Below are positions 16,378-43,905 of a stretch of DNA of 57,325 nt, in pieces (within the stretch, counting starts at the first letter, position 1; each line of letters opens with the position of its first letter). A program made the position numbers and the translations under genes. Source of the DNA: Chara braunii (taxonomy: Eukaryota; Plantae; Charophyceae); the NCBI GenBank assembly GCA_003427395.1, contig BFEA01000018.1, positions 3,499,743 through 3,557,067 on the forward strand. The letters are read 5' to 3'. The notes under the pieces were generated by a model. The model worked only from the letters and a program-made list of their open reading frames with translations. It was not told where the DNA came from and did no database searches.

Positions 16378-16455
<78 letters not shown>
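16378..16455. repeat. (GT)n microsatellite next to an assembly gap (N 16456-16669)
   Basis: Direct observation. Confidence 0.98.
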
Positions 16456-20486: not shown

Positions 20487-20962
20487 TCTGTTTTTGTTTT
20501 GTTCCAATGCCCCGTTCGGTCTGTCGAGTAATAGGGGTCTCGGGGGGTGGCGGTCAAATGGTGTTGTTTTTTGGTGTATGTGGTTGGCCCAATTTCTTTT
20601 CTTTTTTTCTTTCTTTGTGTAACTGTAACTGTAATTGTAACCGTGAATAAAACGGCGAACTACTCTCGACATTCACAAAAGACAAAAATCATGGCCGTGC
20701 ATCTTTCCATGTTTTACTGGAAGATCTGTTTTTGTTTTGTTCCAATGCCCCGACCGGTCTGTCGAGTAATAGGGGTCTCGGGGGGTGGCGGTCAAATGGT
20801 GTTGTTTTTTGGTGTATGTGGTTGGCCCAATTTCTTTTCTTTTTTTCTTTCTTTGTGTAACTGTAACTGTAATTGTAACCGTGAATAAAACGGCGAACTA
20901 CTCTCGACATTCACAAAAGACAAAAATCATGGCCATGCATCTTTCCATGTTTTAGCGGAAGA
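20487..20962. repeat. Near-identical 238-bp tandem duplication
   Basis: TCTGTTTTTGTTTTGTTCCAATGCCCCG at 20487 and 20725; duplicated ORFs offset by 238. Confidence 0.95.
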
Positions 20963-21784
20963 TTCACTCTCGTTTTGCACAGTTCGAGAGTAGTGCAGCT
21001 AGCCCCTATGTGTATAATGTGTATGGGCCGATTCTGCAATCTGTACAGATTTTGTAAAATCGTCTCGTGGCCCGAGCCTTGACGCCCGAAGAGGAATAGG
21101 GTTGCTAACCTCATTGTAGATTTATCTGTGGGCAGATGACATCCAGGTTCAAGCGCGTGGGATCTGATACATTGTAGGTGTATGTTGTAGGTGTACGTTG
21201 TAGGTGTACGTTGTAGGTGTATGCGGTGTGGCAGAAAACGGGTTGGGGGGGAGAAAACAGAAACGTTTTTTTTTGTTTTTGTTTCTTTTTTGTTTTTTTT
21301 CTTCTATATTCTTCTCTCAACTTCTGTTTTTGTTTACCTTCCACTACCTACTCCTAACACTATCTAGAGGGGAGCCCTGCAAGCATAGTTTCCTCTCTCT
21401 GTGAAGGGGAGATTTCATGTTGCCCCTTGCCCCTAATGGTTAGGGTATAGGGTTGGGGCCGCCAGTGGGGGTCTGGCTAACACAAAGACCGAGACCTGCC
21501 AGTAGCTGTGCCTCCCTTTCTCATCGTCCCCCACCCTTCATCCAGTAGCAGCAGAGGCTATGGCCAACACTCTCCCACACACCACACACACACCCGTGCT
21601 GGTCATAGACCCTGCTAATACCCATCAGGGGTATCCAGAGGACTAGTGCCCTTTCTTTTGTTTTTTTTTTTCTTCCTGTTTTAATTTTTGGCCTGATTGT
21701 GTCCATTTATCTATGAGCAGATGACATCCAGATTCAGGTGCGCAAAATCTGATATTTGTAGGTGTACGGTATTGACTATTGACC

Positions 21785-21901
21785 TGGCTGCACTACTCTT
21801 GAAATGCACAAAAGACAAAAGTCATGGCCGTGTATCTTTCCATATTCTAGAGGAAGATTCACTCTCGTTTTGCACATTTCGAGAGTAGTGCAGCGAGGCC
21901 C
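21785..21901. mobile_element. ~120-bp MITE, probably PIF/Harbinger (Tourist-like); other copies near 20895-21005, 26848-26955, 27218-27340, 31780-31878, 32010-32109, 32124-32253
   Basis: TIR consensus GGGCCTCGCTCCACTACTCTC, shared core CACAAAAGACAAAAA..ATCTTTCCATGTT..GGAAGATTCA, often TA-flanked. Confidence 0.75.
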
Positions 21902-22888
21902 TATGCCTTCACCATATTCACTACAGTCACCTGTAAGAACTTAGGTACGAGCCGTATGAATGATGTGTGCAAGAAAGACAATGGGCCTCGCCACACGGCG
22001 CATGAAACGAAAATGGAACGAGTGCATCTTCCCACCAAAGGTGGCAAATACACTCGTTAAACCTGGCCACTTTGTTGGGGGGATGCACTCGTGTCCTGTT
22101 TTTTTTTTTTAAAGCTATATTCTTCTCTCATCCATCTCATTTTCTTGCTAGTACTCATCTATCTCATCCTCTCACTAGTTCGCAGCCCGTAGGCTGCGCT
22201 ATACCTCGTCGTTTATGTGTAGTAGGGGGGAACACCAACCAACCCGGATCTCTCCCCAGCCCACGGGGTAGGTTGGCACCACAGCAGTGGTGTGAGAGCA
22301 AGGCTGTACCAGTCCCTCCTCACGGTGACAAGGGGTGGGGAGGCATTGTTGATGGGGGAAATCGGCGGTGGTAGCGCCGAGCGATGGCCAGTCACTGCAC
22401 CTCCCCCCTACCCCCCCCAAACCCCGCATGGCGGTGTCTAATGGCCGATATTGTGGCTGCATAGCAACCAAAAACATCAACCAAGGTCCTGGCAGATTCT
22501 TCTGCCCGTTACGGGCTGCGGGCCCGCGACCTCGCGGTATGTCAATAGGACCATGTTATCGAGGAGCACTTTCCACGGCTCCTCGTTAGCGATGGTACCC
22601 CTGGCAAATTTGGACCATTTCTTCTTCTTTTTTTTTTAATAAAAAAAAGGGCCCTCAGGGCTTCATATTATGCAGTTGAAATAGCACTGAGGCCGGGAAT
22701 CCTCAACAAACAACCCGGAAAAAAACTTGGACCATTTCTCGATTTATGCGTGTCATCCTTGCGCAGGGGCCATTTGCTAATCTTCTTTCTCTGTATCGTT
22801 CCAATTCTTACGGATGTCCCGAAGGGCCCCCTGGCAAATTTCGACCAGGGAAGATGCAAGGAACTGCCAGAAAAGACTGGTGTTAGCC

Positions 22889-22920
<32 letters not shown>

Positions 22921-23058: not shown

Positions 23059-23817
23059 ATGGCGGTCGCCATAGCTCCGAGCTCATCACGCCTTTATGGC
23101 GTGCGTGGCCGAGCGCGTCATCTTCCGACCCGCGCCGGTCTCCCTCCCCTTGTCCGTTCGCTGGCGTGTCTTCTTCTCGTGACCGCTGCTCATCTTTGCT
23201 GCATGCCAACAGCTTCTGAACCAGTGCCACGTGGCGTGTTTCCCGTCTGTTCAGGAGAAACTCTGGTCGAAGACGGATATGGCGGATGCCAGACTTCGTC
23301 GTCGTCGTCGTCTTCATACGGGCATTCCTTCTTGTGCGAGCCAGACCCGGTGGCTATGGCCGCCATGAAGCCCGTCTGTCCTCCCTCTAGCCCCCCTACC
23401 TCCGCATTCACGTCGCTGACCGTCTCTGTTGTGCCAGGTGTGGGCTACGTGTTCGCAAATGCCACCAGTTGCCAGCCAATCAAGCAATCTGAGTCCGGAT
23501 TTCTGACCGGACTCTTCAACGCTACCTCAGGGATCGTCATAATCCCGGAGAAGGGAGTGGACCCCAGGGCGTATGCTCCTTATGCTCGCGCCATGACTGC
23601 AGCGGGAGCCTTCGCTGTCATCGTCACGGATATCAACGAAGCCAACGTCGTTCGAGCGTTGTCCATATCCCTCTCCCCTCCCCGAATCTGGGCCGTGATG
23701 GGACACGGGACCTACGGCGGGGCTCTGGCCACTCTTCTCGCCCGTTCTCTGTACCCGCGAATCACCACACTCATTCTCCATGCGGCTGCCATTCCTCCTG
23801 ACATCGACTTCTCGCAG
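23059..23817 (+). CDS. Exon 1 of tandem alpha/beta-hydrolase gene: hydrophobic N-terminal segment plus first part of non-canonical domain 1
   Basis: ATG at 23059; [18 protein letters not shown]; [22 protein letters not shown]; [11 protein letters not shown]; phase-0 donor CAG|GTCAGA at 23817/23818. Confidence 0.85.
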
Positions 23818-24609
23818 GTCAGATTCGGATCTCTAACCTGGGTTTGTTTATGGGTTTGTTTATGGGTTTGTTAAACTTTGTTTATGTTTATTGGTTTGTT
23901 TTTGTTTATTGGTTTGTTTGGTTCATTCGTTGATAGGTCAGAGAGAGAGTCGGAGTTATCCGAGTGTTTCAGACGACTTCCCCCGAATACAGCGTACTGT
24001 CAAATTATAGCGGAATTTGGGGTATCTTTCAGTCTAGACTCTAGATACAGTGATCATGACCGGGCGTTGTAATCGGGGGAAGAAGGTAGGCCCATTGCAC
24101 GGCGCTATAGCTCTCTCTGTATTCCGCTGCGGCACAGACAGAAGAGTGCCTGTACCTAACCCGAAAATAGGCAGTATACCTTGATTTTAATTTATTAGCC
24201 GCCTGACTTACATTCGCCGGGGGAAGAAGGAGGTAGTTGCCATTTTTGGTAGCTCATTCGTTGCCTTCTTCCCCCCTCGCACACCCCCTTTGAGCCGTTA
24301 ACGCACGCTAATTATGAATCTATACAGCCTCCTTTTCGTTTTTTTTCAAAACGTGAATGTAAACGTGAATGTATACATAGTACATACACCCCCCCGTGAC
24401 CCCCGTTTGTCAATGAGCAGTTGCATTCACGTTTACCATGATCATGCTGGCTCGCTGGCTCACCATCGACTTTTGCTCCCGCAGTGCCTTCACTGGCACT
24501 CGCCATATTGATGCTTGGCGTCCGTTCGCTGGGAGCTTTCATTAGAATAATATCCTCTTTGTTTTTTTTTTCCTCATTTAATTTAGAATATTTTCGTCAT
24601 CAGCTCCAA

Positions 24610-25063
24610 CGGCCCTGATGTATCACCATGGAGCTAACCGGCCCTAAGCAATTCAGAATTGCAGTATTTTCCTCATCTGATCAGCATTCGGTGGAGTTCG
24701 AACTCAGGTCTATATGTGAACAGCTCCTCAGGGGTGTGCCAACTGAGCTAGGCCAGTTGGTTGTGATATCCTTTCAGCATAAGTCAGCATCTGGGAAATT
24801 TTTCTTCACGAATCTCTTGGCAATGTGCCACCATCTTCTTCTTCGTCGTCGTCTTCTTCTTGTTCTTCTTCTTCTGCTGCTGCTGCTGCTGCTGGAACTG
24901 CTGTTCTTCTTCTTATGTTTTTCCTTGTAGAGGGCCACGGCCATGAGGTATCATCATTGAGCTTGTGTACCAACTGAGGTAGGCCAGTTGGTTATGATAT
25001 CCTTTTAGCATAAGTCAGCATCGGGGAATTTCTGTATGAATATCTGGTGCCTTCTTCTTCTTC

Positions 25064-25095
<32 letters not shown>

Positions 25096-25900
25096 TTCTG
25101 CTTATGTTTTAAATTCCGTTTCGAGGACTGCCATGAGGTATCATCATTGACCTTGTGTGCCAACTGAGCTAGCATAAGGCCAGTTGGTTATGATATCCTT
25201 TTAGCATAAGTCAGCATCTGGGAATTTCTGTATGAATATCTTGTGCCTTCTTCTTCTTCCTCTTCTGCTGCTGCGGCTGGTGATGGGGCTGCTGTTCTTC
25301 TTCTTATGTTTTAAATTCCGTTTCGAGGGCGATGGCCATGAGGTACCATCATTGAGCTTGTGTACCAACTGAACTAGGCCAGTTGGTTATGATACCCTTT
25401 TAGCATCGCGGAATATCTTTATGAATATTTTGTGCCTTCTTCTCCTGCTGCCGCTGCTGCTGCGATGGCCATGAGGTATCATCATTGAGCTTGTGTGGCA
25501 ACTGAGCTAGGCCAGTTGGTTGTGATATCCGTTTAGCATAAGTCAGCATCTGGGAATTTTCTTCATGAATCTCTTATGCCATCTTCTTCTTTCTTCGTCT
25601 TCCTCGTCTTCTGCTGCTGCTGCTGTTCTTCTTCTTATGTTTTTTTCGTTTTGAGGGCGAGGGCCATGAGGTATCATCATTGAGCTTACGGCCCCCAACT
25701 ACTGAATTCAGCGTTATTTTACTCTGTCCTGCTGGTTGCATCTGGATTCGAACTTGGGTCTGTATTTCACGTGTGTACCCAACTGAGCTAGGCCCGCGTT
25801 GGTCCTCCTGTTTTCTCCGTTTGCATCGATGTGGTGTTTTCTACCATTGCATTTTTTTTTTTTTAATTACGGTCTTGAGATATCATCATTGAACTGACCG
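24610..25900 (-). repeat. Tandem array derived from a tRNA-SINE head, with (TTC)n/(CTG)n tracts
   Basis: CAACTGAGCTAGGCCAGTTGG (reverse A box) at ~24740, 24971, 25161, 25366, 25499, 25780; B boxes at ~24697 and ~25747; same family as 49128-49240. Confidence 0.8.
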
Positions 25901-26240
25901 GCCTCAGGTAAGTCAGAATGATGTTGTTGTTGTTGTGTTCGGGTTGTTCGGCTTTTTAGGCTATGAAGCTACTGTTGTTTAAACTAGCTCAGAAAGGGGA
26001 CTGCAGGGCAAGGACCTAAGTGGCCGAGTACGCCCTAGTTAAGGACTCCCCATCTGAAGCATAAGCAAACCTGACTGAGGCTGTCAGAGGTTCTCAACCG
26101 GGTTGAATTGTGGGGTCCCCGGCCCCGAATCGATTTTTGGAAGAGACAATTTTGCTTTGGAAAAAAAAAGAAAAAAAAAGGAAAAAAAAAAAGAATGATG
26201 TTGTTCTGTTCATCTGACGTAATCTGGATTCAAACTGGGG

Positions 26241-26696
26241 TCTATGAAGATCATCTCTTTTTTTTCTAGCAAATCCTTGTTTTTTCGAAGCATCCTGTAT
26301 TTCAGCAGATAAAGATTGATCTAAACTTATGTTTTTTTTTGTCAAACGTCGTCTCCACAAGGCGCCTTCAAGAATCCACCGAAGAGCTAAGGTTTCTTGA
26401 CGACTCTTTGGTATAATGGACTTCTAAAATAGGTTTGACATTTTCAATCGCGTTAACAAAATGCGTGATTACATTCATAGACAAGTTCTCATTAGCTAGA
26501 CAATAGAAAGTTTTATAAACAATAGCACNAGATTTTGTTTTTTTCCCATGAATCATACAAATGTTGATAAATTTGTGTATCAATTGTTGTACCTTGCAAT
26601 TCTCTAAAATCAAAGGCTCGAAGAGCGAGACTTGTGAGATTTTTCGGTTCATATTTCAATTTGGGGTTTTTTGGTACCATATTTTGATCTGCCTCG
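26241..26696 (-). pseudogene. rps7: NUMT: 3' end of mitochondrial rps12 plus disrupted rps7
   Basis: RGRSKYGTKKP (rps12 C-terminus), ATGA overlap at 26649-26652, FINICMIHGKKTKS, AIENVKP, RQETLALRWIL, SLDQSLSAEIQDASKKQGFARKKRDDLH. AT-rich; internal deletion with frameshift near 26418. Confidence 0.9.
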
Positions 26697-27053
26697 CAAA
26701 ATACGGGGATGACTTGTGGCTAGGGGTAAATAAAGAAAGAGTAAGAATCAATCGTCCGAGTATTGATTCTTCAGCGTATTTTACGCTTCATGCCTTTTGC
26801 CCCATAGGCGCGTGAGCACTTATAGAAAAACTGGCTCATTTGCCATATGGGCCTCGCCGCACTACTCACGAAATGCAATGCACAAAAGACAAAAAATGAT
26901 GCTGGTGCATCTTCCCGTTATCTAGAGGAAGATTCATTCTCATTTTGTACATTTTGTTTGGTGAGCAATGCGGCGAGGCACTTCAATGTGGTTGGTTTAC
27001 CCACCAACGACACGTCGTGTGGGCAGAGACACGAATGCCACCCCGTGACCCCG

Positions 27054-27229
27054 GTGCCACATCACTGTTTGCACGGGACCTGGAAGGCCAGCCCATGGCT
27101 TTTCTGCATGGACACGTTCCACACACATGGGGCCTCGCTCAGTGCCACATCACTGTTTGCGCCGGACCTGGAAGGCCAGCCCATGGCTTTTCTGCATGGA
27201 CACGTTCCACACACATGGGGCCTCGCTCA
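27054..27229. repeat. 88-bp tandem duplication ending in a MITE TIR
   Basis: GTGCCACATCACTGTTTGC at 27054 and 27142. Confidence 0.9.
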
Positions 27230-27758
27230 CTACTCCCGAAATGTGCAAAACGAGAGTGAATCATCCGGTAGAACATGGAAAGATAACACCACCATGATTT
27301 TTGTCTTTTGCGCATGTCAAGCGTAGTGGAGCGAGGCCCATGCATTTTCTTCATTCCCTGATCCTCGATCATCCACTTCGATTGGCGGATGTTCCAGGAC
27401 GCCAAAATTGGGAACCTACACTGGCACTAAACAGACGCACACCAGGAAAGAAAAGAGAAGAAAAGAAAAGAAAAGAAGGGAAAGCCCGTGCAAACAGCAA
27501 CGTCTCCACGTGCGCCGCTGCACCCACAAGGCATGCATTGGCTGTAGCATGGCGATAGCTTGCACGCAATCGACCTTTCCCAAAAGATGAGAGGAAGGGT
27601 GGGTGTGGTCTTACAACGGGTTCATCTGTACAACAGAATGGACGATTACTGTGGGTCACTGTCATCTGTCAAGAATCCCGCCGTTTGGTTGAACGTGCAA
27701 CTCCCATGAGGGAGGTCGTGTGTTCGATCCTTGAGGTCGGATCATGTACGATAAAATT

Positions 27759-27759
<1 letters not shown>

Positions 27760-27825
<66 letters not shown>

Positions 27826-30800
27826 GAAAGTCGAGCTTTTTTTTCAATTGAACAATTAGATCAAGGCCGGGGACCTCACAATTCTACCCGGAGTTATCCT
27901 GGGGCCATTACCCAGTTTAGGCTTAGCTGAAAACCGGGTTCAGCGGCCCATCTTGCTCTTGCTAAAACCTTCCAAAAAAAAAACAGAATCAAGCTTGAAG
28001 CTCAACAACAAGGAAAGCTGATGACTACTTCTAGTTTATTTCCTGGATAAACCGTGACCTGCAAGGATTAAAGCCTTTCAAATAAACTACAAGAGAAAAA
28101 CAGAAAAACTTCTACCAGTGAGTACCTTGAAAAGTAAACTCAATCTTTAAACTTTTTAAAATTAGGTCTAATACGACCTCACCAGTTCTCTACAAGCTCC
28201 TCTATTGCACCCACCTCAGTCCTCTTGGCTCTGAAGCCAAGGAGATATAGAGAAAGATCCCTCTGGGCTAACTGTCACCCATTTACTGGCTGCACCCCAT
28301 GTTCGTTGGAACCACAGTAGGTTCCTAGCTCCAGGCAAACGGCGCTGAGTCCAGTCTGCAGTTATAGTAAGCCTTAATTTGTTCTTCAGCAGTGCCTTCT
28401 GATGAGGAAGGGAGAAAATTTCCCCCTTAAATACTTTTGCGTTCCGAGCTGTCCAGATAACCTCCAGTAATGCCCCTCGACAACACAGTGCCACATACCC
28501 TATACCTGCAGATAGACCGACTCCTGAGGGGGGAAGGCCTGTAAGCCACCAAGTATCTGTCCACGGCATTTCCTGATCATACAGGAGGTGCCAACGTCTC
28601 TTCCACCATTCCAATAAACCGTCTAGGAGCGGGCAGAAGAGCCAGAGGTGCGCTTGGTCTTCCCAACCCCAGTTACAGCGTTGACAGATAGGGAAGACCT
28701 CCATTCCCTTAGCAGATAACCAAGATGCAGTAGCAGTCACAAAAAGGGACTGCAACCAGATGATTGCTGCCTGCTTCTGTGAAGGCAGCTTCTTCAGGGC
28801 GATCCATAAGATCATCAGATTATGCTCTGACACCCCTGAAAGTTGCTGCTGTTCAGCTCTCTTAAGAGCCAGAGCTGTCGGTTTTAGCTTTGACTGGGTA
28901 CACTGGAACTCCACACCTGTTTTTGAGTTATACTGGCACAGAGGAGTAAAAGAATTATTGGACTTCAGCCCCTTCCAACCAAACAGGAGTGGTTCCACCC
29001 GATAGGTGGCTGCATTTCTCCCCAGCAAGGCCGTGGCTTTCCCCTTCCCATCTTCCTGGTACAGAACTCGGACCTCTTCGAGCTCAGACGTATATGGAAC
29101 CACTTGTTCTCCTGTCTCGCGTAATTGCCCCTTAGTCTGCAAGATCGAAGACAGAGACCAAGTCTGTACCTTGGTACCTTGATCTGGAGCAGGGCCCAAG
29201 ACTCTCCAGATCTCATTAGGATGATTGGGAGATCTAATCCATGTGTTCTGCGCATTCTCTGAATCGGATTGTAACAGGTAAGCCCATGCTTGTGGAATAG
29301 CTTCCAGTAACAGTTGAAAGTTTCTTGAAAGGTTATGTACCCTAGGAAGCTTCCTTCGCAGAGCCTCCTCGTTAATCCAGTCCGAGAGGACTGGATCCCA
29401 AATGTCTTTAACTTGCAGTACGCCTTTCTTGACCCACGTGTTTCCAAAGTTTAAGTCTCCTCCCTTAGCTGTAAAGGGAGACCCATTCTGCTGCATAATA
29501 TGGGGGTTATCAAATAGAATCTGATTCAGGCATTCCTTTTTTGTCTGAGGCGGTCTCCACTCTGTAGGCTTCAGTTTGTTCCAAGCATACACAATGTTAC
29601 GCCAGATTCTTGACTGAGGGCGACGCTGGGAAAAGGACGGCATCATAAGGCAGACCGACAGTTTAGTAGTATCCTCCAGTCCCCATTCGCTGCCTAAGAT
29701 ATATTCTGCGAGCCTCATCCAGATTGTCCACTCTTCCCCAACCATGGCTTGGACTGGCCACTTAGACAATAAAGCAAGGTTTTGCTTCAATGGGTCCAAA
29801 ACCCCCAAACCTCCTTGGCTGCGCGGCCTGGCTATTGCCTCCCATGCCACCTTGGAGATAAACCCTTGTTCTTCTGAAGCAGAAGGTTTCCATGGGTATC
29901 TTGCTGCAACCCTCTTAATCTTCTTGTATGCTTCCTCTCCTAGCAAACAAATCGCCATAGGGAACCAGAGAGTCGAAAAAGCAGCAGCGGAAAGGACCAG
30001 CGCCCTGCCAAACAAGGAAAGAGTATGCCTTCTTTCCCACTTCGCTATCCTCGTCGAAGCTTTCCCCACCAATATATTATCCTGAGTTGAAGAACAATCA
30101 GACAGAGACACCTGTATTCCCAGGAACCTGTCCGAGGAGTTAAAATGCGGCGCAGGCCCCACTCCACACACAGCTCGAATTGGGGGGGAAGAAAAAACAC
30201 AGATTTGTCCCAATTTATTGAGGCTTCCAATAGTTCACAATACGTATCTATAATCTTACGTAATTCTTACAGGCAATCCGAAGAGTTCACACAGGCCACG
30301 GTTAAGTCATCAGCAATGGCACCCACCTTCCAATGTAGGGAAGGGGGGGCTCTTAGGCCTTCAATAACACTATTAGCCCGGATATTATCCAATAATACAT
30401 CCAGTTGAAGAACGAAAATCAATGGGGCCAGGGGGCAACCTTGCCGCAATGAGCGGGTCAAAGTGAATTCTTTAGAAAGCTTACCATTTACAACCACAGA
30501 GGCTGTTGCACTCGCATACAAAGCTTTAATCCAAGTGCAAAACTTGGGGCCAAACCCCAGCCTTAGTAGAGTTGTGTTTACGAAAGCCCAGCCAACCTTG
30601 TCATAAGCTTTCTCCATATCGAGCATTAGGATGGCCAGGTTTCTTCTCTCTTTTCCAATAATTTCGAGGGCCTAAATTGTAGTTAGAATGTTTTCGAATA
30701 TCGACCTCCCCTTAACAAAAGCGCCCTGTTCCATCCCTACCAAAGAGGGGAGAATCTCAGCAAGTTTAATTGCAAGGATTTTCCCTAACAATTTATTGGT

Positions 30801-30985
30801 CACATTCAGGATTGAAATCGGTCGCCAATTGCAAACCTCCCTTTTGTCCCCTTTTTTGTAAAGAAGAGAAATCACTCCTCGAACCATCCCATTAGGTAAC
30901 GAACCTGTCGAGATGACTCTGTTATAGACTTCGCACAGAAAAGGGGCGAAGGCTTCCCATGCGGAGAGAAAGAGTTCAATGTTCT
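27760..30985 (-). mobile_element. 5'-truncated L1-clade LINE (ORF2 RT plus zf-RVT, 3' UTR, poly-A)
   Basis: NWRPISILN, QGAFVKGR, LDMEKAYDKV, LRQGCPLAP, AIADD, CQRC..EDQAHLWLFCP; poly-A tail seen as T-run 27760-27823; few disruptions. Confidence 0.95.
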
Positions 30986-31314
30986 GTGGAAAGATAGTAT
31001 CTAGTCCTACCAGTAGGAGCGGCACATGGGAACTCACCCATTTTTTCAATTATGAATAATTTTTGTAATGAACACAGGCATGTCATCCAATCATGTTGCA
31101 GATAACAATGTCGTGCAATGTCGTGAGATAATCAATCCAACAAGTCCATGTGTTCGAAGTCATCAAAGTACATGTTTCCTCATTACCACGTGTATGTCTC
31201 AAAGTCCACAGTATCCAGAAAAGGAGAGGAGGGGAAAATAGACAACAGGAAGAAGAAGTGTAATGCCCTCTTCTCCTTCAGGGTCCCCACCTCTGCCACG
31301 TCAGCAATATGCAC

Positions 31315-32670
31315 CATACTTGCGGCGCATCCCATGCGCGCCACTCGCGCACATGCGGCGCACTGCGCATTGCGCACGTGGCGCGCGCATGGGCAAAATT
31401 CGGGATCAGCCAAAAAAAAAAAAAGTCGGGGAGGGGGTGAATCAAAGTTCCGACGCCCAGCCAAAATTAGGACATTGCCCGCGCAATTTTTTTTCAAGGC
31501 CGCGCGGCCCCAAAATCTGTGTGTGTTGTCATGTTTGTTGTACACAACTTCATGCTATCCTCAGTGTATCTGAGCCCTTTCAGAGGTCCAATACGGTCAT
31601 GATGAGGACGCGTCTGTGGAACCGTTGCTTTCGGCTCATTACTTCCAGGTATAGAAAACGACAGAACTGACCGTTGTGTTTTATTGGTGCTTTCGCTTAA
31701 AAAAAAAAAAAAAAAGAGAAAGAGAACTTCCGTGACAAGTTGAAAACCAACAACGTGGAAACACGCAGTAGCTATACACATGCACAAACGACAAAAAATA
31801 TGGCGATGTATCTTTCCATGTTCTAGTGAAAGATTCATTCTAATTTTGCACAAATTGGAGAGTAGTCGAGTGAGGCCCTATTACAACTTACTTGCCGCCA
31901 GAATCCGTAGGGCCTCTCTCAACTACACGTCCGTTGTAGTGCCTCTGTCACATGAGGGCTGCAAGTAAGCTTCAAGTCCAGCTGTAGTCCGGTGCGATGC
32001 AAGGGCCTTGTTCCACAAAAGACAAAAAATATGGCGGTGTATCTTTCCATGTTGTAGCGGAAGATTCATTCTCATTTTGCACATTTGGAGAGTGGTGGAG
32101 CGAGGCCCCAGGCTACCGTTGTATGGCCCTCGCTCCACCCATCTCCAAATGTGCAAAATGAGAATGAAATTCAATGAATCTTCCGCTAGAACATGGAAAG
32201 ATACACCACCATATTTTGGTCTTTTGTGCATGTGGAGAGCAGTGGAGGGGGGCCTTGTCAGTGAACAGGCTGTAACTGTTTCCCAAATAAGACAAAAACA
32301 AATAAGATAAAAAAGAAGGAAAAGCAACGGGCCTATCGGGCTGAACGAAACGCCCTCTGTCGAGAATCCATAGTGTCCGATGATACAGGCGTTTTGTTCG
32401 GTCCGATTGTGTCAGGAGAATGGTGTCGTGGCACAGCAGACAAACGCTTGTATCAACAACACACACACACACACACACACATACACACACACAAAAAAAA
32501 AAAAGAAAAAAAAAAGAAAGGCACATCCGCAGATGCGCTGGCATGGGGGTCACTCGGCCGCACTCCAGCGCACTGCCCGTGCGCGCTCAGTGCACGCGGT
32601 GCGCATGTGCGCACCCATCACCCGGGAGCACATGGCGCACGGCGCACCGCTTAAGTGCGCCGCAAGTATG
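31315..32670. mobile_element. Non-autonomous hAT-type DNA transposon inserted in the 3' LTR
   Basis: Perfect 15-bp TIR CATACTTGCGGCGCA (31315-31329 / 32656-32670), 8-bp TSD ATATGCAC (31307-31314, 32671-32678), GCGC-rich subtermini; absent from the other LTR. Confidence 0.92.
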
Positions 32671-35600
32671 ATATGCACTCAATGTGCCACGTTAGCACTC
32701 CGTAATCAATATGCCACGTCAACGTCAGCGATATGCACACAATGTGCCACGTCAGCAATATGCACTCAGTGTGCCACGTCACCACTCCATGCAACACATG
32801 GACGATGTGGAAGCAGCCCCTCGCAGATAAACGATCCTCCAACAGTGAGCAGAACCGTCAGCAGCTTCACATTTGAAGAAACCAGGTACATATGCACGAC
32901 AACTCACATCACCCACACTCTCCCTCTCCCTCTCCTCATTCTCTTGCCATCATCTATGGCCGTGACCGTAGCCGTCCTCTCCCTCTCTCTATACTATAGT
33001 GTCTGGTTGGCGCCCATCCGGCAGCCTGGTGCCAGCACCTCCTCTCAAGTCTCGAGTGCAGCGTCATAGCCGCAAGCAACTCGCAAGAGTGAAATCCCCA
33101 GCAGTGGCAAGGTCAACTTCATATAGTGAGGGGCCGCCTGTCCAACGTCAGCATTGGCCCAAGTGAGGGCCCGGATCCTCCAATTTGTCGCAGTTTCAGT
33201 TTGGACTCCTTGAGGCCTGAATCTTCCGGAACCTGCAGACCACTGTTGGATCATTCCAGATCAATGGCCAGGAAATCTTAGTGTGTTGACTTGACTTCTC
33301 AGATTTGGGTCTGGGTCCACGAGCTGACTGTTGACTTTTTGGTCAATGTCGGCCTGGGCCTTTTCCAAGGCCTGTTTGACCCCTTTTTTTTCCAGGCCTG
33401 CCCGTTCGTGCCTGTCTATGGGCTTGACGAGAGCCCAGCGGCTCAATTTGGCACACGAGATACCGCATTCCATCCGGCCCGATTTCTAGTTTCATCGCAG
33501 AAATTTCTTTTCAGGCCTGGATTTTTAAACTTCACTCGTATGTGGAGAGAATATTAGGAGCAGTAGGTAAGAGTTCTCTTTTACTAAACCAGCAAGCTTC
33601 AGACAATGGTTGATTGGAAAACTTTACCTTCTATTGCTTCTGAGGTCTTCCTCTAGCTCCACTGGAGAAAAACCCATGTTCAATGATTTTCTCCACTTGG
33701 TACCCGACATCCATTGAAGGAGGAATCGAAGATGGTCTATTGGGGAATTCCTGTCCTTCAGCATAGGTGGAAGACTGGGTAGGTCTTTAGAGGAGGGGGA
33801 ATATCAATTTGGTGGGATGGTCCACCGGCGTCCCCTATTACTTTAAGTACTTCGAGGGTCCATCGTAGACGGGTAGCAATTTCTGCGAGGCATTTTTCTC
33901 AAGTGAGAATTCGTTAGATTATACCCAAACCATATCTCCTTCTTGGAATTGCGCAGGCCTTCGATGTTTGTTTGCCTGTTCAATCATTTTCTGTTGGACT
34001 TCCTTTATATTCTCTTTTGCTTTTTGAACGTCTTGCTCATAGAAAACTGCAAACTCTCGCGTTTCTAGGGGCAGCTTCTGGATTTGATATCTTGTTAGGA
34101 GTCAATCGGTCTCAGAGATTGCCAACCTTTTTGCAATGCATTCAGTGTGTGTCCTGTAGAAGTGTGTACGCTATTAATGTATGCACTTGCAATTTTGGGA
34201 AGATTTTCATCCCAGTCAATCTGATCAGGTCGCACATACATATGTAGGAGTTGTTGGAACAACTTGTTTATGTGTTCAATTTGACTGTTAGTTTGAGGAT
34301 GTCGTCCTGAAGACGTAGTCATTCTGGTGCTGTAAGCTTCCATCATTTTTTATCATTGCTCGCTTGTAAATCGCATATCTTTGTTAGATACAATAGTCTT
34401 GGGAAATCCATATTCAAAAACCCATCACATCTGAAATTTTTGAATTACAAGCAGTTCTTGCTTCAACAGGCAAAAAAACAAACATAGCGTACTTAAAGGA
34501 TTGACCCACGATTATCATTACCTGATTGTTTCCATTTTTACTCTTCGTTAGGCTTATGAAGTCGATGGAAATAGACTCACACCTGGTCTTTCGGGAATTG
34601 GTAGTGGTCTTAGTTATCCCAAGGGACTCTCGTAGGATGGTTTGTTGCGCTGACACACAAGGCAAGTGTGTCATTTTTCATTCCTTGCCAAACAAAATGT
34701 TCTCGGACATTGGCAAAGGTCTTTTTAAACCCAAAGTGTACTTCAGTATCATGGCACTGACTAAGAATTAGACTCTTTATAGGTTCATTATGTGGAACAT
34801 AAATTCTTATTCATTACCATCAATAAAGAAAAGTGTTTGATTAGTCATTCAATAATCAGAGAAACTTCCCGGATTAGATTTTAGATTGTCTATAATAGGT
34901 TGCCAGATTTGGTCAGTGACGTATCCTTTTCTAATTTTATCCTTTAGTTCGTTTTCAATGTCTAAGTTAGTAACAATAATTCCAAAGAAGTCACTTCTTC
35001 TTCAGAGAGCATCGTCCAACACATTCTACTTTCCTTTTATGCTTTTCGGTTCAAAGTCATATGTGTCAATGATAGTTGATTATCTAGCAAGTTTATCAGT
35101 GAGATGGGGTTGTGTTTTGAGCCTCTTTTGAGTTTCATGATCTGAGTAAACTTTGAAGTGCCTACCTAAGAGGCAGTGCTTCCACGCCAGAAGAGTCTGC
35201 AACAATGCATGCAGTTATCTCTCGTAGGTTGAGTTAGCAACTTTTTTCTGAAGGAAGTCTGCAATACATAAACTCAGTTGGTCGATAACCTTTCCCATCA
35301 TTTTGCTGCAATACAGCCCTAATCGCATACTGACTTGCGTCAGTGGTCACGACAAAAGGTAAGGATGGGTCTGCAATTTTCAAAATAGGATAGTGAGTAA
35401 GTGCATTCTTCAACTTTTTAAACGCGGACTCACAATCTTTATCCTAAAGGCAGATTGTCTCTTTCTTCAAGAGTTTCCTCATTGGGGTAGCCATAGTGGA
35501 GAAGTTTCTGACGAACTTCCGGTAATAACTAGCCAATCCAAGGAAGGAACGAAATCCAGTTAGGGTCATATGTCTGAGGTACAAAACTTCAGACTTTGCG

Positions 35601-38600
35601 AATTCAGACCTCTTAAAGTTCAGTTTAAAGTTACCTTCTCTGAGTTTTTGTAGGATCAAACGCAGATGTTTATCGTGGTCTTCCAACGTTTTGTTGAATA
35701 CAAGTACGTCGTCAAGGTATACAACCACGAATTGATCCAACCAATCTCTAAATTATTCATTTATTAATCTCTGAAAGGTCGCGGGTGCTTGACTTAGGAG
35801 GTCATCAATTTGAGCGAGGGGTTCAACATTCTTGACAGTGACCACCTTCAACCCTCGATAGTCGATGCAGATTCGCAACTCCCCTTCCTTTTCGGGAACA
35901 AACAAAACAGGAGCCCCATAAGGAGACGAGACAGTTAGTTCATGTAGTTGCTTCCTTAGTTCGTCAAGTTCCTTCGGCAACATACGGTAGATTGGTCCTT
36001 GGGGAATCTTACTATCGGGAATAATTTCAATAGTATGTTTGACCTTTCTTTCAATTAACCCCGTTGGTTCCTTCTGCAGGCCCTTATATTCGTCGAGTAA
36101 TTTTTCAATAGCAGGAGGGTAGGAGGCGGAACATTTAGCGACAATCCTTACTAATAACATCATCACCCCCTGCGCCAACTTATTTTTCACGACCATCGAT
36201 CAAAATGCACGAAGACTTATACAAACATCATCACCCCCTGCGCCAACTTCTTTTTCACGACCATCGATCGAAATGCAGGAAGACTTATACAATAGAAATT
36301 CAAAACTGATTTGTGATACAGTTTGGTGGCTTTCAGTTCGTTATTCTCATTCTTGATTTTCACAAATTTTTCCTTATATCTTATCTTGGGGTTTGCTTCC
36401 TCATGCCAATCCATTCTCAAAATCATATCAATGGCAAATTCTTCTCAATTAGAAAGGTTACTTCATGCAAGATACGCTTACCTTCTTGTGTCTTGAAGTA
36501 ACACTTCACATTTTCCATACAAGGGGAAACTGTAATGGTACTCTGATCTGCCAAACATAGAGACAGTAGGCTTCGCTAGATTCTTTACTCACATACTCAA
36601 GTGCATTTTCTTTACAGCACCCTCGGATACGTAAGATCTAGTCGAGCCCGGGTCTAACAGAGCACTGGCATGTGTCCTAGTGATTTCTACGTCTGCAAGC
36701 ATTAACTCACCCTTAGACTTCACCTTCTTAGCCCATGAGCTTCGTAGGTTAATCAATTCAGTATGAAGCTCATCAAGGATCTCACTTAGAGGAACTATAC
36801 ACATCACAGGTTTAGGGCGATCTGAGTGAGGGGCCAGGGAAGAGACATCCTTTGCCCTAGGAGCTGAAGGGTGGAAAGTGGTTTCCGGCGCCGACTCTAC
36901 GTCTGCACCCTTCGACCAGTAGGAGCAGATGCTACTCCTACTGGTTGTTCCCTTTTGGGCTCCTAATCAAAGGACACCATGCTATTATGTGCCCCACCAT
37001 GCTGCACTTCAGGCACTGATGATTGTCTGTTCTCTCCCGCCATGTGTCTTGAGAAATGCCCATCTTCTCCCAAGGCCTCCCTGCACCTATTCCAGGATGA
37101 GTTGGAAAGGAACGTGGCCTCCTCCTATATTCATTTTCATTCCTATTATTGTTGTCACCCTTGCTGACAACTGTGGTGGTGACATCACCCTTTCCCGATT
37201 CGCCGCTTGCACTTCCTTGTCCCTCGCTTCCTTCGAGGGGCAACTTCTCCATTGTGTCGTCATCGAATACAACGAGAGTGTGGTCTTGCCTTTTTTGTCT
37301 CCACAAGACTTTTTTTTCCTGCCCACCGCCCATCTTTGTAACCCCAGCGTAAGGATTCTTGACCTGGGCGGTCATCTGTTGCAAAGCGAGATCTCGGAAC
37401 TGTCGGTAGTTGTAACCTGATTTAGCTTTCGCTACTAGTTGGCCATGGATTGGTTCTGGCAATGCACGTGAGTAGATGTACAGGACCTGGTCGTTGTGTA
37501 TATTCAGGCCGGGTACCTGCAACAAACGATCTACCTCACGAGAAAGCGCGCCAACAGACGTCCGGTGGCGCTAAGACAATGAAGTCAGTTGGTCGAACGC
37601 TTTGTCTGTTGTGGTCTTATCTAGGAATCGTTCTTATTTTCTTCATGAATTCCCTCAATGTCAATGTCTGTGCCCAATCCCCGATAAACTCAAACCCAGC
37701 AGCATTCGCTTCAGACAGTACTCATGCCTTGGTGTCTTCGCCAAGACATGAGGTGGTGAATGCCACCTGGCTTTCTTCTTCAACGGGGGTCGTCAAGCAA
37801 TAATTGAACTTCAACAATCCACAACAACAGGTGTTCTCCTTTCTTTCCGATAAATGTGAAAGGAAGCTTCATCTTCACTTTGTCCCTTCTTACTTCTTTC
37901 TTTGGAGTTTCTTCTTTGGGGGGTCTCTTCATTGCATCTCCCATTAGTTTCTTTTCTGGTTCAAGCTTTGGTTCTTCCTCAATTTTCTCTTGTTCTTCCC
38001 TAGCCATCGATTGCTTTTGCTTAACCGCATTGATCAACGTTGCTAACTGGGTAGAAAGCAGATTCTTATCGGCGATGACCTGATCTAGCTTTGTCTCCAA
38101 GTGAACCAGGTAGGACATCATATTTTGCATGAGAGTTGCAATGTCACTTCCTTCTTCTACTTGCACTTTGCTTCAGATTTCATTCATTTTCCTCTCTTTC
38201 TCTTCTTTCTTCTTTCTTTGCTGTTCAATAGATTCCTTCTTCTTCTTCTCTACTCGCAATGCTTCTTCCAACTGCTTGATGTTTTGGTCAATCTTTATTT
38301 AATTCCTGTATGTTTTCCCCGCTTGTTTCTCCTTCTTTCCTTTTTTCTTATTCTTCAATGTGTTGAACATTTCTGGTCAGCATTTCAGCGACAAATTGGT
38401 CCAGACTGTGACAGACCCTGGCTAAGACCAGGTTCATTTCTCCTGCCACACGGAGGAGATCAACTCCTGTCATAGCCTGGTCCAACTATTCCTCGAAACT
38501 GCGCAGATCAAACTGGCTCCAGACATGGGCTTCTGCATCCGGGCCAGCCGCATGGATTTCAATCAGGGCCTACTACAATTCCAACTTTTCTCGGTCCCTG

Positions 38601-38842
38601 CGGACGTTTACTTGCCCGTGTGTACGTTCTTCATCTGCATACAACGTCAGTGAGACCAGGTGGAGAAACAAGGGAATGCACTTTGTCAATCCAGACACCT
38701 GCGCGCTGCGCCATAAGGAAGCCATCCTTAGAGATACCGCATAATCAGACTATACAATTATCTGTTCCGCAATCTCATCAGGAATTCAGAACAACAAAAA
38801 GAAAATAAATAAAATCCAATAATAATTATCAATGTCTTGATC

Positions 38843-38940
38843 TTTTTTTTTTTTTTTTTAAACGGGCCCAGTGCCCAAGGCTGATATTATCAACAAGAAG
38901 CTTGAGGCCGGGGTCCTCACAGTCTACCCGGAGTGACCAA
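38843..38940 (-). mobile_element. ~100-bp 5'-truncated LINE tail with poly-A and TSD
   Basis: TSD ATCAATGTCTTGATC (38828-38842) / ATCAATGCCTTAATC (38941-38955); shares the CCGGG..CCCGG tail motif of the L1 at ~27865. Confidence 0.8.
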
Positions 38941-40689
38941 ATCAATGCCTTAATCTACTTTTCTTTTTAATGTACTTTGCTGCTTGTGATGTTGTTGACA
39001 ATGTGTGTGGATTCCTTATGGCCCTGTGATCAGAAATCAGCAGCAGGCAGTCCACAGGTGAGACAACATCAGAAACCGCACAGGTAAGTCCACATCAGCA
39101 TCAATCAACACATCAACGAGGTAAGTCCATATCAGGGCCAATCAAAGGCCTGACTCATATCAGCACTCAACGGGACACATCATCCTGCCTATCTTCAACA
39201 ACTGCAGCATTTCTCTCTTCAGTATGCCATGTAGGCAACGCTATCACCGGTATGCCACGCGGACAATGCTCTTTGCCAGTATGCCACGTAGGCAATGCTA
39301 TCGCCAGTATGCCAAGTGGACAATGCTCTCGGCAGTATGCCAGGTAGGCAATGCTATCGCCAGTATGCCACGTCATTGCTTAGTTGTCTTCTTCAACGCT
39401 CTTCAATCAGTACAGCTTCTACTGGCGATTTATTCCCTCGCGGGAACCAGCCAGTGAGCGCCACGTCAGCGCAGGCCTATGGTAAGAACCACTCTGCCAA
39501 TCATGTTGCAGATAACAATGTCGTGCAAATGTCGTGAGATAATCAATCCAATAAGCCCATTTGTTCGAAGTCATTGAAGTACATGTTTCCTCACTACCAC
39601 GTGTACATCTCAAAGTCCACATTATCCCGAAAAGGAGAAGAGGGGAGATTAGACAGCTGGAAGAACCTCTTCTCCTTCAAGGTCCCCACCTCTGCCATGT
39701 CAGCAATCTGTGTGCCATGTCAGCAATATGCACTCCATGTGCCACGTTAGCACTCCGTACTCAATATGCCATGTCAGCGTCAGCGATATGCACACAATGT
39801 GCCACGTCAGCAATATGCACTCAATGTGCCGCGTCAGCAATATGCACTCAATGTGCCACGTCAGCACTCCATGTAACACATGCATGATGTGCAAGCAGCC
39901 CCTCGCACATAAACGATCCTCCAACAGTGAGCAGAACCGTCAGCAGCTTCACATTTGAAGAAACCAGGTACGTATGCATAACGACTCACATCACACACAT
40001 TCTCCCTCTCCCTCTCCTCATTCCCTTGCCGTCATCTTTAGTCGTGACTGTAGCCGCCCTCTCCCTCTCTCTACACTATAGTGTCTGGTTGGCGCCCATC
40101 CAGCAGCCTGGCGCGAGCACCTCCTCTCAAGTCTCACGTGCAGCGTCGTAGCCGCAAGCAACTCGCAAGACTGAAATCCGCAGCAGTGGCAAGGTCAACT
40201 TCATATATCGTTGACTCGCCTGTCCAAGGTCAGCGTTGGCCCAAGTGAGGGCCTGGATCATCCGATTTGTCCCAGTTTCGGTCTGGACTCCTCGAGGCCT
40301 GAATCTTCCGGAACCTGTAGACCACTGTTAGATCATTCCAGATCGATGGCCAGGAAATCTTTGTGTGTTGACTTTGACTTCTCGGATTTGGGCCTGGGTC
40401 CACGAGCTGACTATTGACTTTTTGGTCAACTGTCAGCCTGGGCCTTTTCCAAGGCCTGTTTGACCCCTCTTTTTCCATGCCAGCCCGTTCGTGCTTGTCT
40501 GTGGGCCCGACGAGAGCCCAGCGGCTCAATTTGGCACACGAGTTACAGCAATTCACTACTTTTTAAAGTCTTTTTTTAAGTTTCTTTATAGTCTTTGAAT
40601 TAAGATTGGTTAGGAATGTTGACATAACAATGAGGCAAAAGTGGTTTGCATTGTTATTTTGCATAACATACTTTTTTTTCAGATTTTTC

Positions 40690-40840
40690 TTTTTTTTAAT
40701 GGTACGGACATTTCCGGACCTGCTTACCAGTCCGGACCGTCTGGAACCATGCATGTCCGGAGGTCCGGATGTGTCCGGACGTCCGGACATCTGGACCCGA
40801 CCGGACATGAGCTCTCCGGGTCCGGGTCCAGCGTAGCTAT
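40690..40840. mobile_element. TCCGGA-rich DNA-transposon subterminal fragment
   Basis: Many (T)CCGGA(C) motifs ending in GCTATG; partner TIR not found. Confidence 0.4.
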
Positions 40841-41466
40841 GGTCGGTAACCTGTTCTGTGCAAGGCACTTGGTTTAAGGATAGAGCAGGGCACGGTCGTA
40901 TAGGTGTGCTCAGGTCCATCATTCTTACCTCTTTAAGAGGGTTTTATTAAACCAAGAGAACTGCATCCCTTCCAGTCCCTCCATCCCAGCAATCTTCCTT
41001 TTTTCCAAAACCTGTGTATGCGCGCGTGTGTGTGGTAAGAATACAAGACCCCAGCATAAAAGCTTCACACCAGATGACCTTCTCCAAAACAGCACATCGC
41101 AAGGCTATGTGCAGCCAAACATTAGTCCACGACTGAGACTGGCATGCCAACGTACAAAAGGACTTCAGACTTCAACACCACATCAAGGCAGCCACTCAGA
41201 TTGACGGTTGAGAGAGGAAGGGTGAAGCGAGAGGACAGACAAGCAACAGTAGCAGCAAAGAACAAAGGCTGGAGGGTACAGGGGAGGCGGGTGGGCAGAC
41301 AACCAGCAATAGGCAACCACTGGGTGAACAGGGCAGAGAAACCAGAAGAACACCGACGAACCATGAAGCAACAGGGCACGACAACACACAAACACACAAA
41401 CCACCAAGAAAAAACACAAGTCCAAAAAATGCAAAGACTGAAAAAAAATAAAACTGATGACGAAAT

Positions 41467-41518
41467 ATTGTTTCGTCGGAGTTGCACCGACTCCTCAGGA
41501 GGCTGAACCCTCGACAAT
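41467..41518 (-). ncRNA. Type III hammerhead ribozyme with intact core
   Basis: AUUG-UC|GAGG(GUUCAG)CCUC-CUGAGGA-GUCGG(UGCAACU)CCGAC-GAAA-CAAU. All three stems Watson-Crick; GUC cleavage predicted between 41513 and 41512. Confidence 0.9.
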
Positions 41519-42411
41519 CTGCGGAATCCCCGTATTTGATGGTTTCGGTCATGAACCCTTTGACCCTTGTTGAAGGCAGACTGTCCCCAAGCGGAGCATA
41601 GCAGCAGGCAGCACCCTGTGGAGCACCAGGCAACACAGTAGAGGCAACACGGCTGCACAACACCAAAAACGACTGCAAGGAACAACATGGCACGCAGGGC
41701 ATGCAGCGCAGCAACTGTGTAGCGAAGCACAAGACATCACAAGCAAGGCAAAAGCACTGCAGGGGACAACAGGCCAAGCGGACCAGCAGCTTGGCAACCG
41801 TGGAGCGGAGCACAAGGCACCAGCAACAAGGCAACCAACCTACAGGGCACACAAGCGGCAAACACGGACGGCACAGCCAGCAGATGAGCAGCATGGCAGT
41901 GGAGCAGCGAAGCGCAAAGCAACACCACAACCGAGCCACACCACACAGCGAAGACAGCAGCTTGCCAAGAACGACCCGCGAGGCAAGCGGAACGGGCAGC
42001 AAGGCAGTGGTGGAGTGCAGACGAGGTCATCCACACATCCAACACGGAGCAAAGCAGCACATCACCTACTCACATCACGGGTGAACCCCGCAGACTGTTG
42101 GTTCCCACCACCCACTGAGCCAGGGAGACACTCTGACGAGCATCCGTCATCACCTACAGGCAACACAAACATCCCAAACCGAGCGCCCCCCCTAAGAGTG
42201 CAGTTGGCACTCCAAACGAGGAACCAGCGACTGATTGGCACTACCTAAGGGTGCTCAGTTGGGCATACAGAAAAATGCTTAGAAAAAATCAGAGGGAGGA
42301 CGGACAGTAGGAGAAGGACTGACAGACATAAAACTGATTTTTTTTTTTTTTTTTNNNNNNNNNNNNNNNNNNNNNNNNNNNNNNNNNNNNNNNNNNNNNN
42401 NNNNNNNNNNN

Positions 42412-42445
<34 letters not shown>

Positions 42446-42786
42446 GAGTTTACCACAACAGCCCCTATCCCACCCAGATGAGTAGATCCAAAATCGAAGC
42501 AGCTTTAATCCTATTGCAGACAATGAAGGCCCTTGAGTTGAGACAATACAACAATGAAACAGTTTCACCTCTTAGCAAGAAGCATGGAGTACAATAGAAG
42601 TGTTTACATCCCTTTTCTTAATTGTGTTCACTTTTGCTTTCTTTGGGCTACCCCTTTCATTTGTTCTTGCCGCGCCCCTTTTACTGTGCCTCTCATGTAC
42701 ATTGTACAAGGCTCGCCATGTTGATCGTGGTTGTGTGTGTGTGTGTGTGTGTGTGTTCCTGTGTGTGTGTGTGAATGTGTGACCAG

Positions 42787-43905
42787 GGGCCATTGGGAAA
42801 CCTTGATGTTGTGCTCAATTACGGCCTTCTGGACAGCATTGTTCCTCCTTCGAAAATTCACAACAGTTTTCAACGCGTTCCAGGAGATGTCTCAGCAAAC
42901 CCCTTTCCGCTGAAGGGCCACTATGATTTCGCTTACTCAACCTGCCATGAGAATCATGTGGGACATGGTGAGGGCAGAGGGCCTCGCCAGGAGTCAGCAA
43001 TGTCCGCCAAAGATGAAATGATACTTCTCCGTCAGTTCACTCTTGTTAGACCGGATCCATTTGCTCAGACAACCGCAAGGGGGCTGTCATATGGTGACAA
43101 CACGCTTCTCCGTCCAGGGCGCAATGATTCCAAAATCTATCCCAAGGGAGGGATGCTAGTTGAACAGATCAGGCTGACGCTCCCACAGAGACATTCTGCA
43201 GCAGGCACAAAGGAACCTGTTCGCTCGTTGTGGATTTTGAAGCCCAATCATGCTCCGCGAGGGGGTTACGTATATGTGGCTGGCGCATATGTTGATCCGA
43301 CAGCCTACTTTCCGTTCCTCTTCCAGGTAGCGGCACAAGGGTACCTGGTGGCCCTTCCACAGATGGAACGCCGTCTTTCTCTGGACCCTATGCTCGCCGA
43401 TCAGGTTCTTGCCTTTGACCATCCGATTCTTCGCACCGTACCCCACAACAAGTGGGCCATTGGTGGTCATTCTTTGGGTGGGTATTGCGCATTCAGTTAT
43501 GCAAGCCTTCCCCAACGCCACAACATCGTAGCTGTGGTTACACATTCAGGTCTGTTCACCCTTCCATTCGGTCTCCTTCCATCGACTGTGAATCTAAGTC
43601 AGTCATCTCTGCCAGTTTGCCAAATTTACGGCTCTCTTGATGGTGTGGTTCTAGGTGATCCAGAATATTTCCGATACAGTGCCAACGACCCTCCTCCAAG
43701 AGGCCGTGGGCTAATTGCGAATTTAACTGCAACGAGGTTCATTCGCATGGAAGGGGCAAATCATCAACAAGTGGGAGAGTACGGGTCCCAGACCAACGAT
43801 ATCATTGCAACAATTGGGCACGTTGAGCAAGAGACTACTTATGCACAGCTGACAGTCGACTGCCTGAACGAGGCAATGGGTTACACGGCCAGTAAGCATG
43901 CATGA
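42787..43905 (+). CDS. Exon 2 of tandem alpha/beta-hydrolase gene: end of domain 1 plus complete catalytic domain 2
   Basis: Phase-0 acceptor CAG|GGG at 42786/42787; VVLNYGLLD..KGHYDF completes domain 1; domain 2 GAYVDPTAY, GGHSLGG (Ser 43471), IYGSLDG (Asp 43639), EGANHQQVGEYG (His 43762). A GTAAGC near 43892 could be a further donor. Confidence 0.9.
   Translation, partial: GPLGNLDVVLNYGLLDSIVPPSKIHNSFQRVPGDVSANPFPLKGHYDFAYSTCHENHVGHGEGRGPRQESAMSAKDEMILLRQFTLVRPDPFAQTTARGLSYGDNTLLRPGRNDSKIYPKGGMLVEQIRLTLPQRHSAAGTKEPVRSLWILKPNHAPRGGYVYVAGAYVDPTAYFPFLFQVAAQGYLVALPQMERRLSLDPMLADQVLAFDHPILRTVPHNKWAIGGHSLGGYCAFSYASLPQRHNIVAVVTHSGLFTLPFGLLPSTVNLSQSSLPVCQIYGSLDGVVLGDPEYFRYSANDPPPRGRGLIANLTATRFIRMEGANHQQVGEYGSQTNDIIATIGHVEQETTYAQLTVDCLNEAMGYTASKHA

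Follow-up and report, generated by a model that had tools for sequence, protein, structure and literature searches.

A type III hammerhead ribozyme in a Chara braunii retroelement and its predicted block by a distant upstream arm

Introduction

The locus described here raises the question of whether a genomic ribozyme has acquired a switch against itself. On contig BFEA01000018.1 of Chara braunii, within the stretch of 57,325 nucleotides that we analyzed (the window), the minus strand contains a hammerhead ribozyme. As the original prediction stated, this hammerhead is followed, one nucleotide past stem III, by a 12-mer (41465-41454) that is the exact reverse complement of CUGAUGA joined to CGAAA, i.e., of both strands of a hammerhead core. 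The naive chance of such a 12-mer within 20 nt is about 1e-6 given the base composition, for a target that was picked after the fact. This exact match is the first argument for regarding the 12-mer, which we call the anti-core, as a conserved cis-inhibitor that clamps both core strands and permits only co-transcriptional cutting. The features needed to evaluate this idea are as follows.

41467..41518, minus strand: type III hammerhead ribozyme; its core, CUGAGGA/GAAA/GUC, is canonical, and the cut is expected between 41513 and 41512.
41454..41465, minus strand: 12-nt anti-core, a version of the 3′ tail of the element that is rare in this exact sequence; UCAUCAG (41460-41454) is apparently common to subfamily B (see below).
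41409..42339 (approximate), minus strand: non-coding element, a long subfamily B variant, G/U-rich on this strand.

We use "focal copy" for this element together with the hammerhead that it carries.

A complete type III hammerhead

The ribozyme has all of its expected parts, which bears out the earlier reading of the minus strand. Stem III consists of 41518-41514 and 41471-41467, stem I of GAGG/CCUC (41512-41509/41502-41499) with loop GUUCAG, and stem II of GUCGG/CCGAC (41491-41487/41479-41475) with loop UGCAACU. The core strands are CUGAGGA (41498-41492) and GAAA (41474-41471). A 3′ product beginning at 41512, as had been proposed, agrees with the cleavage triplet GUC, whose C17 is at 41513. 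The core fits the pattern CUGANGA/GAAA/UH, stems I and II are closed and stem III is open, as in type III. The Rfam model Hammerhead_3 (RF00008) aligns in its entirety to 41465-41520 (minus strand) with 37.6 bits (E 3.5e-6); this is below the gathering score of 48.5 bits, and no Rfam match is obtained at gathering. The majority of the family differs from the focal copy in the core strand, CUGAUGA (position 41494), and in loop 2, UGAAACU (position 41484).

Two further readings of the region were rejected. A type I hammerhead-like reading of 41575-41535 would need G41546 for its GAAAC, and this nucleotide is absent in more than 99% of family depth. A hammerhead of opposite polarity (plus strand), at 41454 or after 41576, lacks a stem II and a valid core.

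An abundant, transcribed and probably Penelope-mobilized family

The focal copy is located within a long intron.

23863..42780, plus strand: host intron of about 19 kb (approximate ends) in the C. braunii gene CBR_g19779 (alpha/beta hydrolase).

The exons of CBR_g19779 on either side are at 23203-23862 and 42781-43902 (plus strand), with an ORF at 42775-43905. The ribozyme has the antisense orientation relative to this gene and would therefore leave the host pre-mRNA intact. On its 5′ side the element abuts poly(A), an assembly gap of 57 N (42355-42411) and (CA)n; its homology to other copies fades at about 41409-41424. A weak direct repeat of 25 nt is present at 42338-42314 and 41458-41433. 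The window contains no second copy of the element, and a spurious 268-aa ORF over it yielded 0 matches when used as a query for other copies.

To survey the family, public runs were aligned to 41330-41720 at 80% likeness, which gives a depth that is not a copy number. The summed DNA contig depth is about 8e5 at the ribozyme core, versus 100-200 in the flank. The focal region is matched by 1,918 RNA reads in 900 Mb, and there are also matches in RNA-type runs of two other organisms. The hammerhead family is clearly very abundant and transcribed. Our literature search found no published description of it.

Most members form a main subfamily, A, which diverges from the focal sequence right after stem III and has the tail seen at loci L002, L010 and L011. 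The tail type of the focal copy, subfamily B, accounts at the core for about 1.4% of the DNA depth and 4% of the RNA reads. One subfamily B copy is available in full, and the remaining data on this subfamily are contigs and reads; twelve Chara loci (237 kb without N) contain six hammerhead pieces, none of them of subfamily B. Over 41540-41700, DNA depth rises to 150,000-300,000, versus 11,000-17,000 at the focal tail, and this region is therefore common to a larger subfamily with other tails. In subfamily B-specific parts, about 7-10 reads to 1 run in the direction that usually represents RNA antisense to the ribozyme, while in the shared core reads run 2:1 the opposite way (library strandedness is unconfirmed in both cases). 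Subfamily B may thus be mostly a passenger in host transcripts.

Several observations suggest that cut RNA is retrotransposed: the copy at L011:3851 follows (TA)n immediately and has the cleavage site as its start, DNA depth falls by half across 41512, and the loose ends of RNA reads vary in position within 41504-41512. For the reads over 41330-41720 no accumulation of RNA 5′ ends is reported, and reads over these 391 nt, which is shorter than one unit, contain no back-joint. The subfamily A copies at L002, L010 and L011 have the attributes of Penelope-mobilized elements, namely dispersal at high copy, variable 5′ ends, inverted copies and microsatellite flanks, and the focal copy lies beside (CA)n, across the assembly gap. 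In C. braunii, hammerheads are known from two families of Penelope-like elements (PLEs), and microsatellites are the targets of Chlamys elements (PMC8557442). The 3′ product probably serves as template for a Penelope-like reverse transcriptase (RT) that inserts the copies at microsatellites. The earlier placement of the ribozyme in a non-coding mobile element is supported. One copy, L002:10935-11243, adjoins (AT)n and is an insertion of the 5′-inversion type, in which a 5′ half (plus) and a 3′ half (minus) of subfamily A meet head to head at the ribozyme core.

The window also contains an element that resembles a Chlamys-type PLE (9641-12424, minus strand; an ORF1 and an ORF with a CxC motif), inserted beside Gypsy pol fragments (6800-9200). 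No canonical hammerhead was found 5′ of it, and the focal element has no sequence match to this PLE (9-12.5 kb) or to ten loci of one PLE ORF1 family; among these, no autonomous partner could be linked to it. Zinc-knuckle/SAP ORF1 genes upstream of GIY-YIG-like sequence occur at L001:2103-3968 and around position 10001 of L003-L012, where the annotation treats them as host genes of Chara (CBR_g...). At the ends of these loci, no canonical hammerhead was found by motif search, BLAST or Rfam.

The exact anti-core is rare within its own subfamily

The expectation that the anti-core is kept, or co-varies, across copies was not borne out. The exact sequence occurs in 0 of the 5 other copies with a tail that were retrieved in 237 kb of Chara DNA, and, among the records listed, positions 41461 and 41466 differ in 95-98% of the contigs and reads that share the focal tail type. 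Among the subfamily B records listed, 10,472 of 10,992 units of depth (91 contigs) and 55 of 56 reads depart from the focal base at 41461. The corresponding share at 41466 is 98% of DNA depth; at 41464 it is 16% of DNA depth, together with 34 of the 56 reads. The core is CUGAUGA in 96%; all of these figures refer to listed contigs and reads, and slippage of a 3-nt repeat in the tail can misregister their columns. The anti-core thus seems largely absent from other copies, an outcome that had been named beforehand as refuting the switch.

The exact form arises because the focal tail changed at 41466, at 41464 and, relative to the majority, at 41461. Two differences between the focal tail and the majority appear to perfect a local quasi-palindrome in the manner of template switching, which is known to perfect such sequences (PMC3820800). 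The majority subfamily B tail has C at 41466, which restores an extension of stem III and so makes this stem longer and activating; of the side complementary to CUGAUGA, only UCAUCAG is kept for certain. A contig from run X9, of another organism, keeps G at 41461 and has 10 of the 12 anti-core bases, which may therefore be ancestral; this counts in favor of the proposed switch. Pattern scans of viral, metagenome and prokaryote collections for a hammerhead followed by an anti-core gave 0 matches, as did a pattern scan of metagenomes for the family core. We conclude that the exact self-inhibiting anti-core is probably specific to the focal copy or to a few copies, and that the exact 12-mer is probably not a selected switch.

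A second exact occurrence of the 12-mer is at 24592-24603, with a similar AATAT lead-in. It lies there within a small CATCAG...CTGATG hairpin at the edge of a repeat array of about 196-nt units (24859-25406), and there is no hammerhead nearby.

Predicted effect of the tail on folding

We expressed inhibition as the free-energy cost of the cleavage-competent fold relative to the ensemble. The analysis draws attention to a structure that forms next to the core.

41459..41477, minus strand: local 7-bp hairpin, 41477-41471 with 41465-41459, which occupies G12-A15.1; predicted P 0.8-0.9 in the focal copy.

In the minimum free-energy structure (MFE) of the isolated 65 nt (41454-41518), this GACGAAA/UUUCGUC hairpin is accompanied by 4 bp of CUGA/UCAG, in agreement with the alternative fold that had been proposed. 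When the natural flanks are added, only the hairpin remains (P 0.8-0.9), and pairing of the tail with CUGAGGA falls to a predicted probability of about 0-0.2. Of the alternative fold first suggested, the hairpin on GAAA therefore persists, whereas the clamp on CUGAGGA does not. Even the hairpin is not predicted to form in family-type tails that have A or G at 41464.

The computed cost of the active fold in the focal copy is 4.6-5.5 kcal/mol without the tail, 6-9 kcal/mol with the tail and 11-15 kcal/mol with the upstream arm described below. The anti-core tail accounts for an increase of 1.5-3 kcal/mol, which agrees with an inhibitory role, as does the view that natural hammerheads were selected for co-transcriptional action (PMC3185496). 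With family-type tails, however, the computed cost is about 1 kcal/mol once stem III is extended, the tail end adding 0-1.3 kcal/mol, and these tails mostly stabilize the active fold through the stem III extension. An X9-like tail carries a computed penalty of no more than about 0.4 kcal/mol, since the fold with the longer stem III prevails. According to these models, the focal copy probably cuts less well than most of the family.

An upstream arm is the stronger predicted block

More extensive pairing is predicted with two segments located upstream, with a repeated spacer between arm and ribozyme.

42090..42152, minus strand: anti-ribozyme arm, 570 nt upstream, which repeats the entire hammerhead and tail in inverted, degenerate form.
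41666..41834, no strand assigned: a pair of direct repeats of 85 nt each (74% identity) within the G/U-rich spacer between arm and ribozyme of the long variant.
41576..41585, minus strand: another upstream segment, a 10-mer closer to the ribozyme than the arm; it is complementary to 41522-41513, where the 5′ strand of stem III and the cleavage triplet lie.

In the predicted fold of 42340-41454, the RNA is a rod in which the whole ribozyme and its tail are paired with 42090-42152. Arm nucleotides 42152-42143 pair at 10 of 10 positions with tail nucleotides 41455-41464, and 42099-42090 pair with the 5′ strand of stem III. Of 11,086 sequence windows on both strands, none forms a better duplex with the ribozyme plus tail than the arm (42085-42160), at -69.7 kcal/mol; the next unrelated one scores -57.8, and the score of the arm was reached by 0 of 1000 dinucleotide shuffles (mean -40.7). 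This duplex is also asymmetric between strands (-69.7 versus -60.1). With flanks to 41440, the tail of the focal copy is predicted to be in the local hairpin with P 0.81, versus P 0.15 with the arm, and the core pairs with the arm with P 0.65. With the nearer 10-mer present, the active fold is computed to cost about 2.5-5 kcal/mol more.

This arrangement is not limited to the focal copy. When the two inverted halves of L002 are joined at their overlap, the resulting subfamily A sequence is likewise predicted to form this rod, capped by a short apical loop, and the arm of the focal copy is homologous to, and aligns with, the main-subfamily arm at L002:10996-11085. The subfamily A rod scores -88 in the ribozyme sense versus -55 in the antisense, includes 16 G-U pairs, and brings the computed cost of the active fold with the arm to about 25 kcal/mol. 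In the helix that closes the rod at the tail, the double-sided differences between A and B, in a comparison of two sequences, are one pair that is A-U versus G-C and one extra A-U pair present only in subfamily B. The extra U of this B helix is what makes the tail read as anti-CUGAUGA.

These results affect the timing that had been proposed for cleavage. The arm and 41576-41585 are transcribed before the ribozyme, so it does not follow that cleavage occurs before a downstream blocker emerges; the strongest predicted blockers are already present before the ribozyme is finished. The broader idea that alternative folds probably keep the ribozyme off gains support from the predicted rod and the upstream blockers. 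Models of folding point to the long upstream complementary arm, rather than the 12-nt anti-core, as the main block. With non-conservation, a hairpin that reaches only GAAA in context and stronger blockers upstream, we think it very improbable that the anti-core is the conserved, evolved inhibitor originally envisaged.

The explanation that we favor, with moderate confidence, is that the locus is an aged copy of a long, rod-blocked variant of a Chara type III hammerhead retroelement, in which the anti-core is an incidental variant of the tail. Under this explanation, full-length RNA in the ribozyme sense would form a long rod in which the upstream arm pairs with the whole ribozyme and tail and turns the ribozyme off, with the tail as the closing helix. 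For C17 to be cleaved, the local hammerhead would have to form ahead of pairing with the arm, in a suitable transcript or along a suitable folding path. A family-type tail would then extend stem III and favor the active fold, and the 3′ product would be the substrate of the Penelope-like RT.

The complementarity of arm and tail could result from descent from an inverted duplication and not from selection; the evidence for selection on this pairing consists of two sequences and the strand asymmetry. An extreme form of this idea is that arm, tail and anti-core are all leftovers of Penelope-type inverted duplication and template switching, and that no fold was selected. An inverted copy is often present next to a PLE (PMC8557442), the arm in reverse complement can be aligned as a decayed copy of the hammerhead, and template switching could have perfected the quasi-palindromes (PMC3820800). 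Loss of C17 in about 65% of family DNA depth and the antisense, intronic position of the focal copy are likewise in keeping with neutrality. However, a neutral inverted repeat is not predicted to be far more stable in the ribozyme sense, as the subfamily A rod is, and the rod persists across two diverged subfamilies. We therefore consider wholly neutral origins distinctly unlikely.

A possible role of the tail after cleavage

A further proposal, compatible with the rod-blocked retroelement that we favor, is that UCAUCAG pairs with the arm in the full RNA and with the CUGAUGA core in the product. The heptamer would become free for the core because cleavage removes both the arm and the 5′ strand of stem III. 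The consequence would be a trapped 3′ product that undergoes no re-ligation or trans-cleavage before reverse transcription. In 3′ products that start at 41512 and have family-type tails, the tail is predicted to pair with the core with P 0.95-0.99 (0.50 for one longer X9-like construct), and TGATG(A) is kept at the place of the heptamer in loose-end consensuses from DNA and from two other organisms. On the other hand, the dominant main subfamily lacks the clamp (P 0.02, L011), which implies that it is not needed for mobility, and the heptamer is already accounted for as the partner of the arm. In the focal copy, G at 41494 breaks the clamp (P 0.25-0.48). On balance, we regard such a lock as rather unlikely.

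The proposal can be generalized to one tail with three registers, which would extend stem III, close the rod with the arm and clamp CUGAUGA in the product for reverse transcription. We judge this combination to be unlikely, slightly more so than the lock by itself; if true, a genomic ribozyme would possess a natural switch that traps its product.

Relationship to known ribozyme-bearing elements

The element falls among known non-autonomous retroelements that bear ribozymes, and is not a viroid. The closest parallels in folding are plant LTR retrozymes, whose RNAs hold the hammerhead "in a blocked conformation" in a long arm (PMC4918200). A retrozyme-like blocked fold, as predicted here, is thus already known from plants. 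Like the Chara element, plant LTR retrozymes (Cervera et al. 2016, PMC4918200) are non-coding, transcribed, on the scale of 0.6-1 kb and of type III. They differ in having two LTRs of 300-400 bp with a hammerhead in each, whereas the Chara window has one hammerhead, no long direct repeat and a gap of 57 N on the 5′ side. They also have a Gypsy-type PBS and PPT and a 4-bp TSD; none of these was seen by eye in the Chara element, whose 5′ end abuts the gap. Moreover, the Chara copies reside at microsatellites, with 5′ ends near the cut site, and their host is a charophyte alga.

Non-LTR retrozymes and the hammerheads of PLE pseudo-LTRs (PMC7229834; bioRxiv 10.64898/2026.07.22.740005) resemble the Chara element in being non-autonomous, in having inverted and 5′-truncated copies and in probable mobilization by a Penelope-like RT. 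However, they have type I hammerheads in tandem units, while the Chara element has a single type III hammerhead and no clear tandem array. The hammerhead-bearing PLEs of C. braunii (PMC8557442) share the genome, the presence of a hammerhead and, in their clade, a bias toward insertion at microsatellites; the focal copy differs in having no RT or GIY-YIG ORF, in a comparison made by description and not by consensus sequence. Avsunviroidae viroids and satellite RNAs (PMC3185496) likewise hide a type III hammerhead in a rod, and co-transcriptional folding matters in them. In contrast to these RNAs, the Chara element is chromosomal DNA, with no hammerhead found on the opposite strand and no sign of circles or RNA-RNA replication.

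The family appears to combine a ribozyme of the plant-retrozyme type (type III, rod-blocked) with insertion of the Penelope type in a charophyte alga. To this the focal locus adds a longer variant, in which the predicted blocking arm is 570 nt from the ribozyme and the closing helix differs on both sides between subfamilies. This variant offers simple constructs for studying how a genomic hammerhead gets switched off.

Other contents of the window

A 665-aa ORF at 28216-30213 (minus strand) has a weak zf-RVT match and is probably a LINE fragment; it has no homologues at E 1e-20, and a LINE ORF search for further Chara loci gave no matches. At 22721-22827 (minus strand) there is a U6 snRNA match (75.7 bits) with insertions of 4 nt and 2 nt in conserved regions. 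It adjoins poly(A) at 22893-22918 and is possibly a retro-pseudogene. Dispersed repeats of about 230-240 nt occur in both orientations in the same intron (20487-20963, 21792-21905, 26892-26954, 27228-27285 and 31768-32112).
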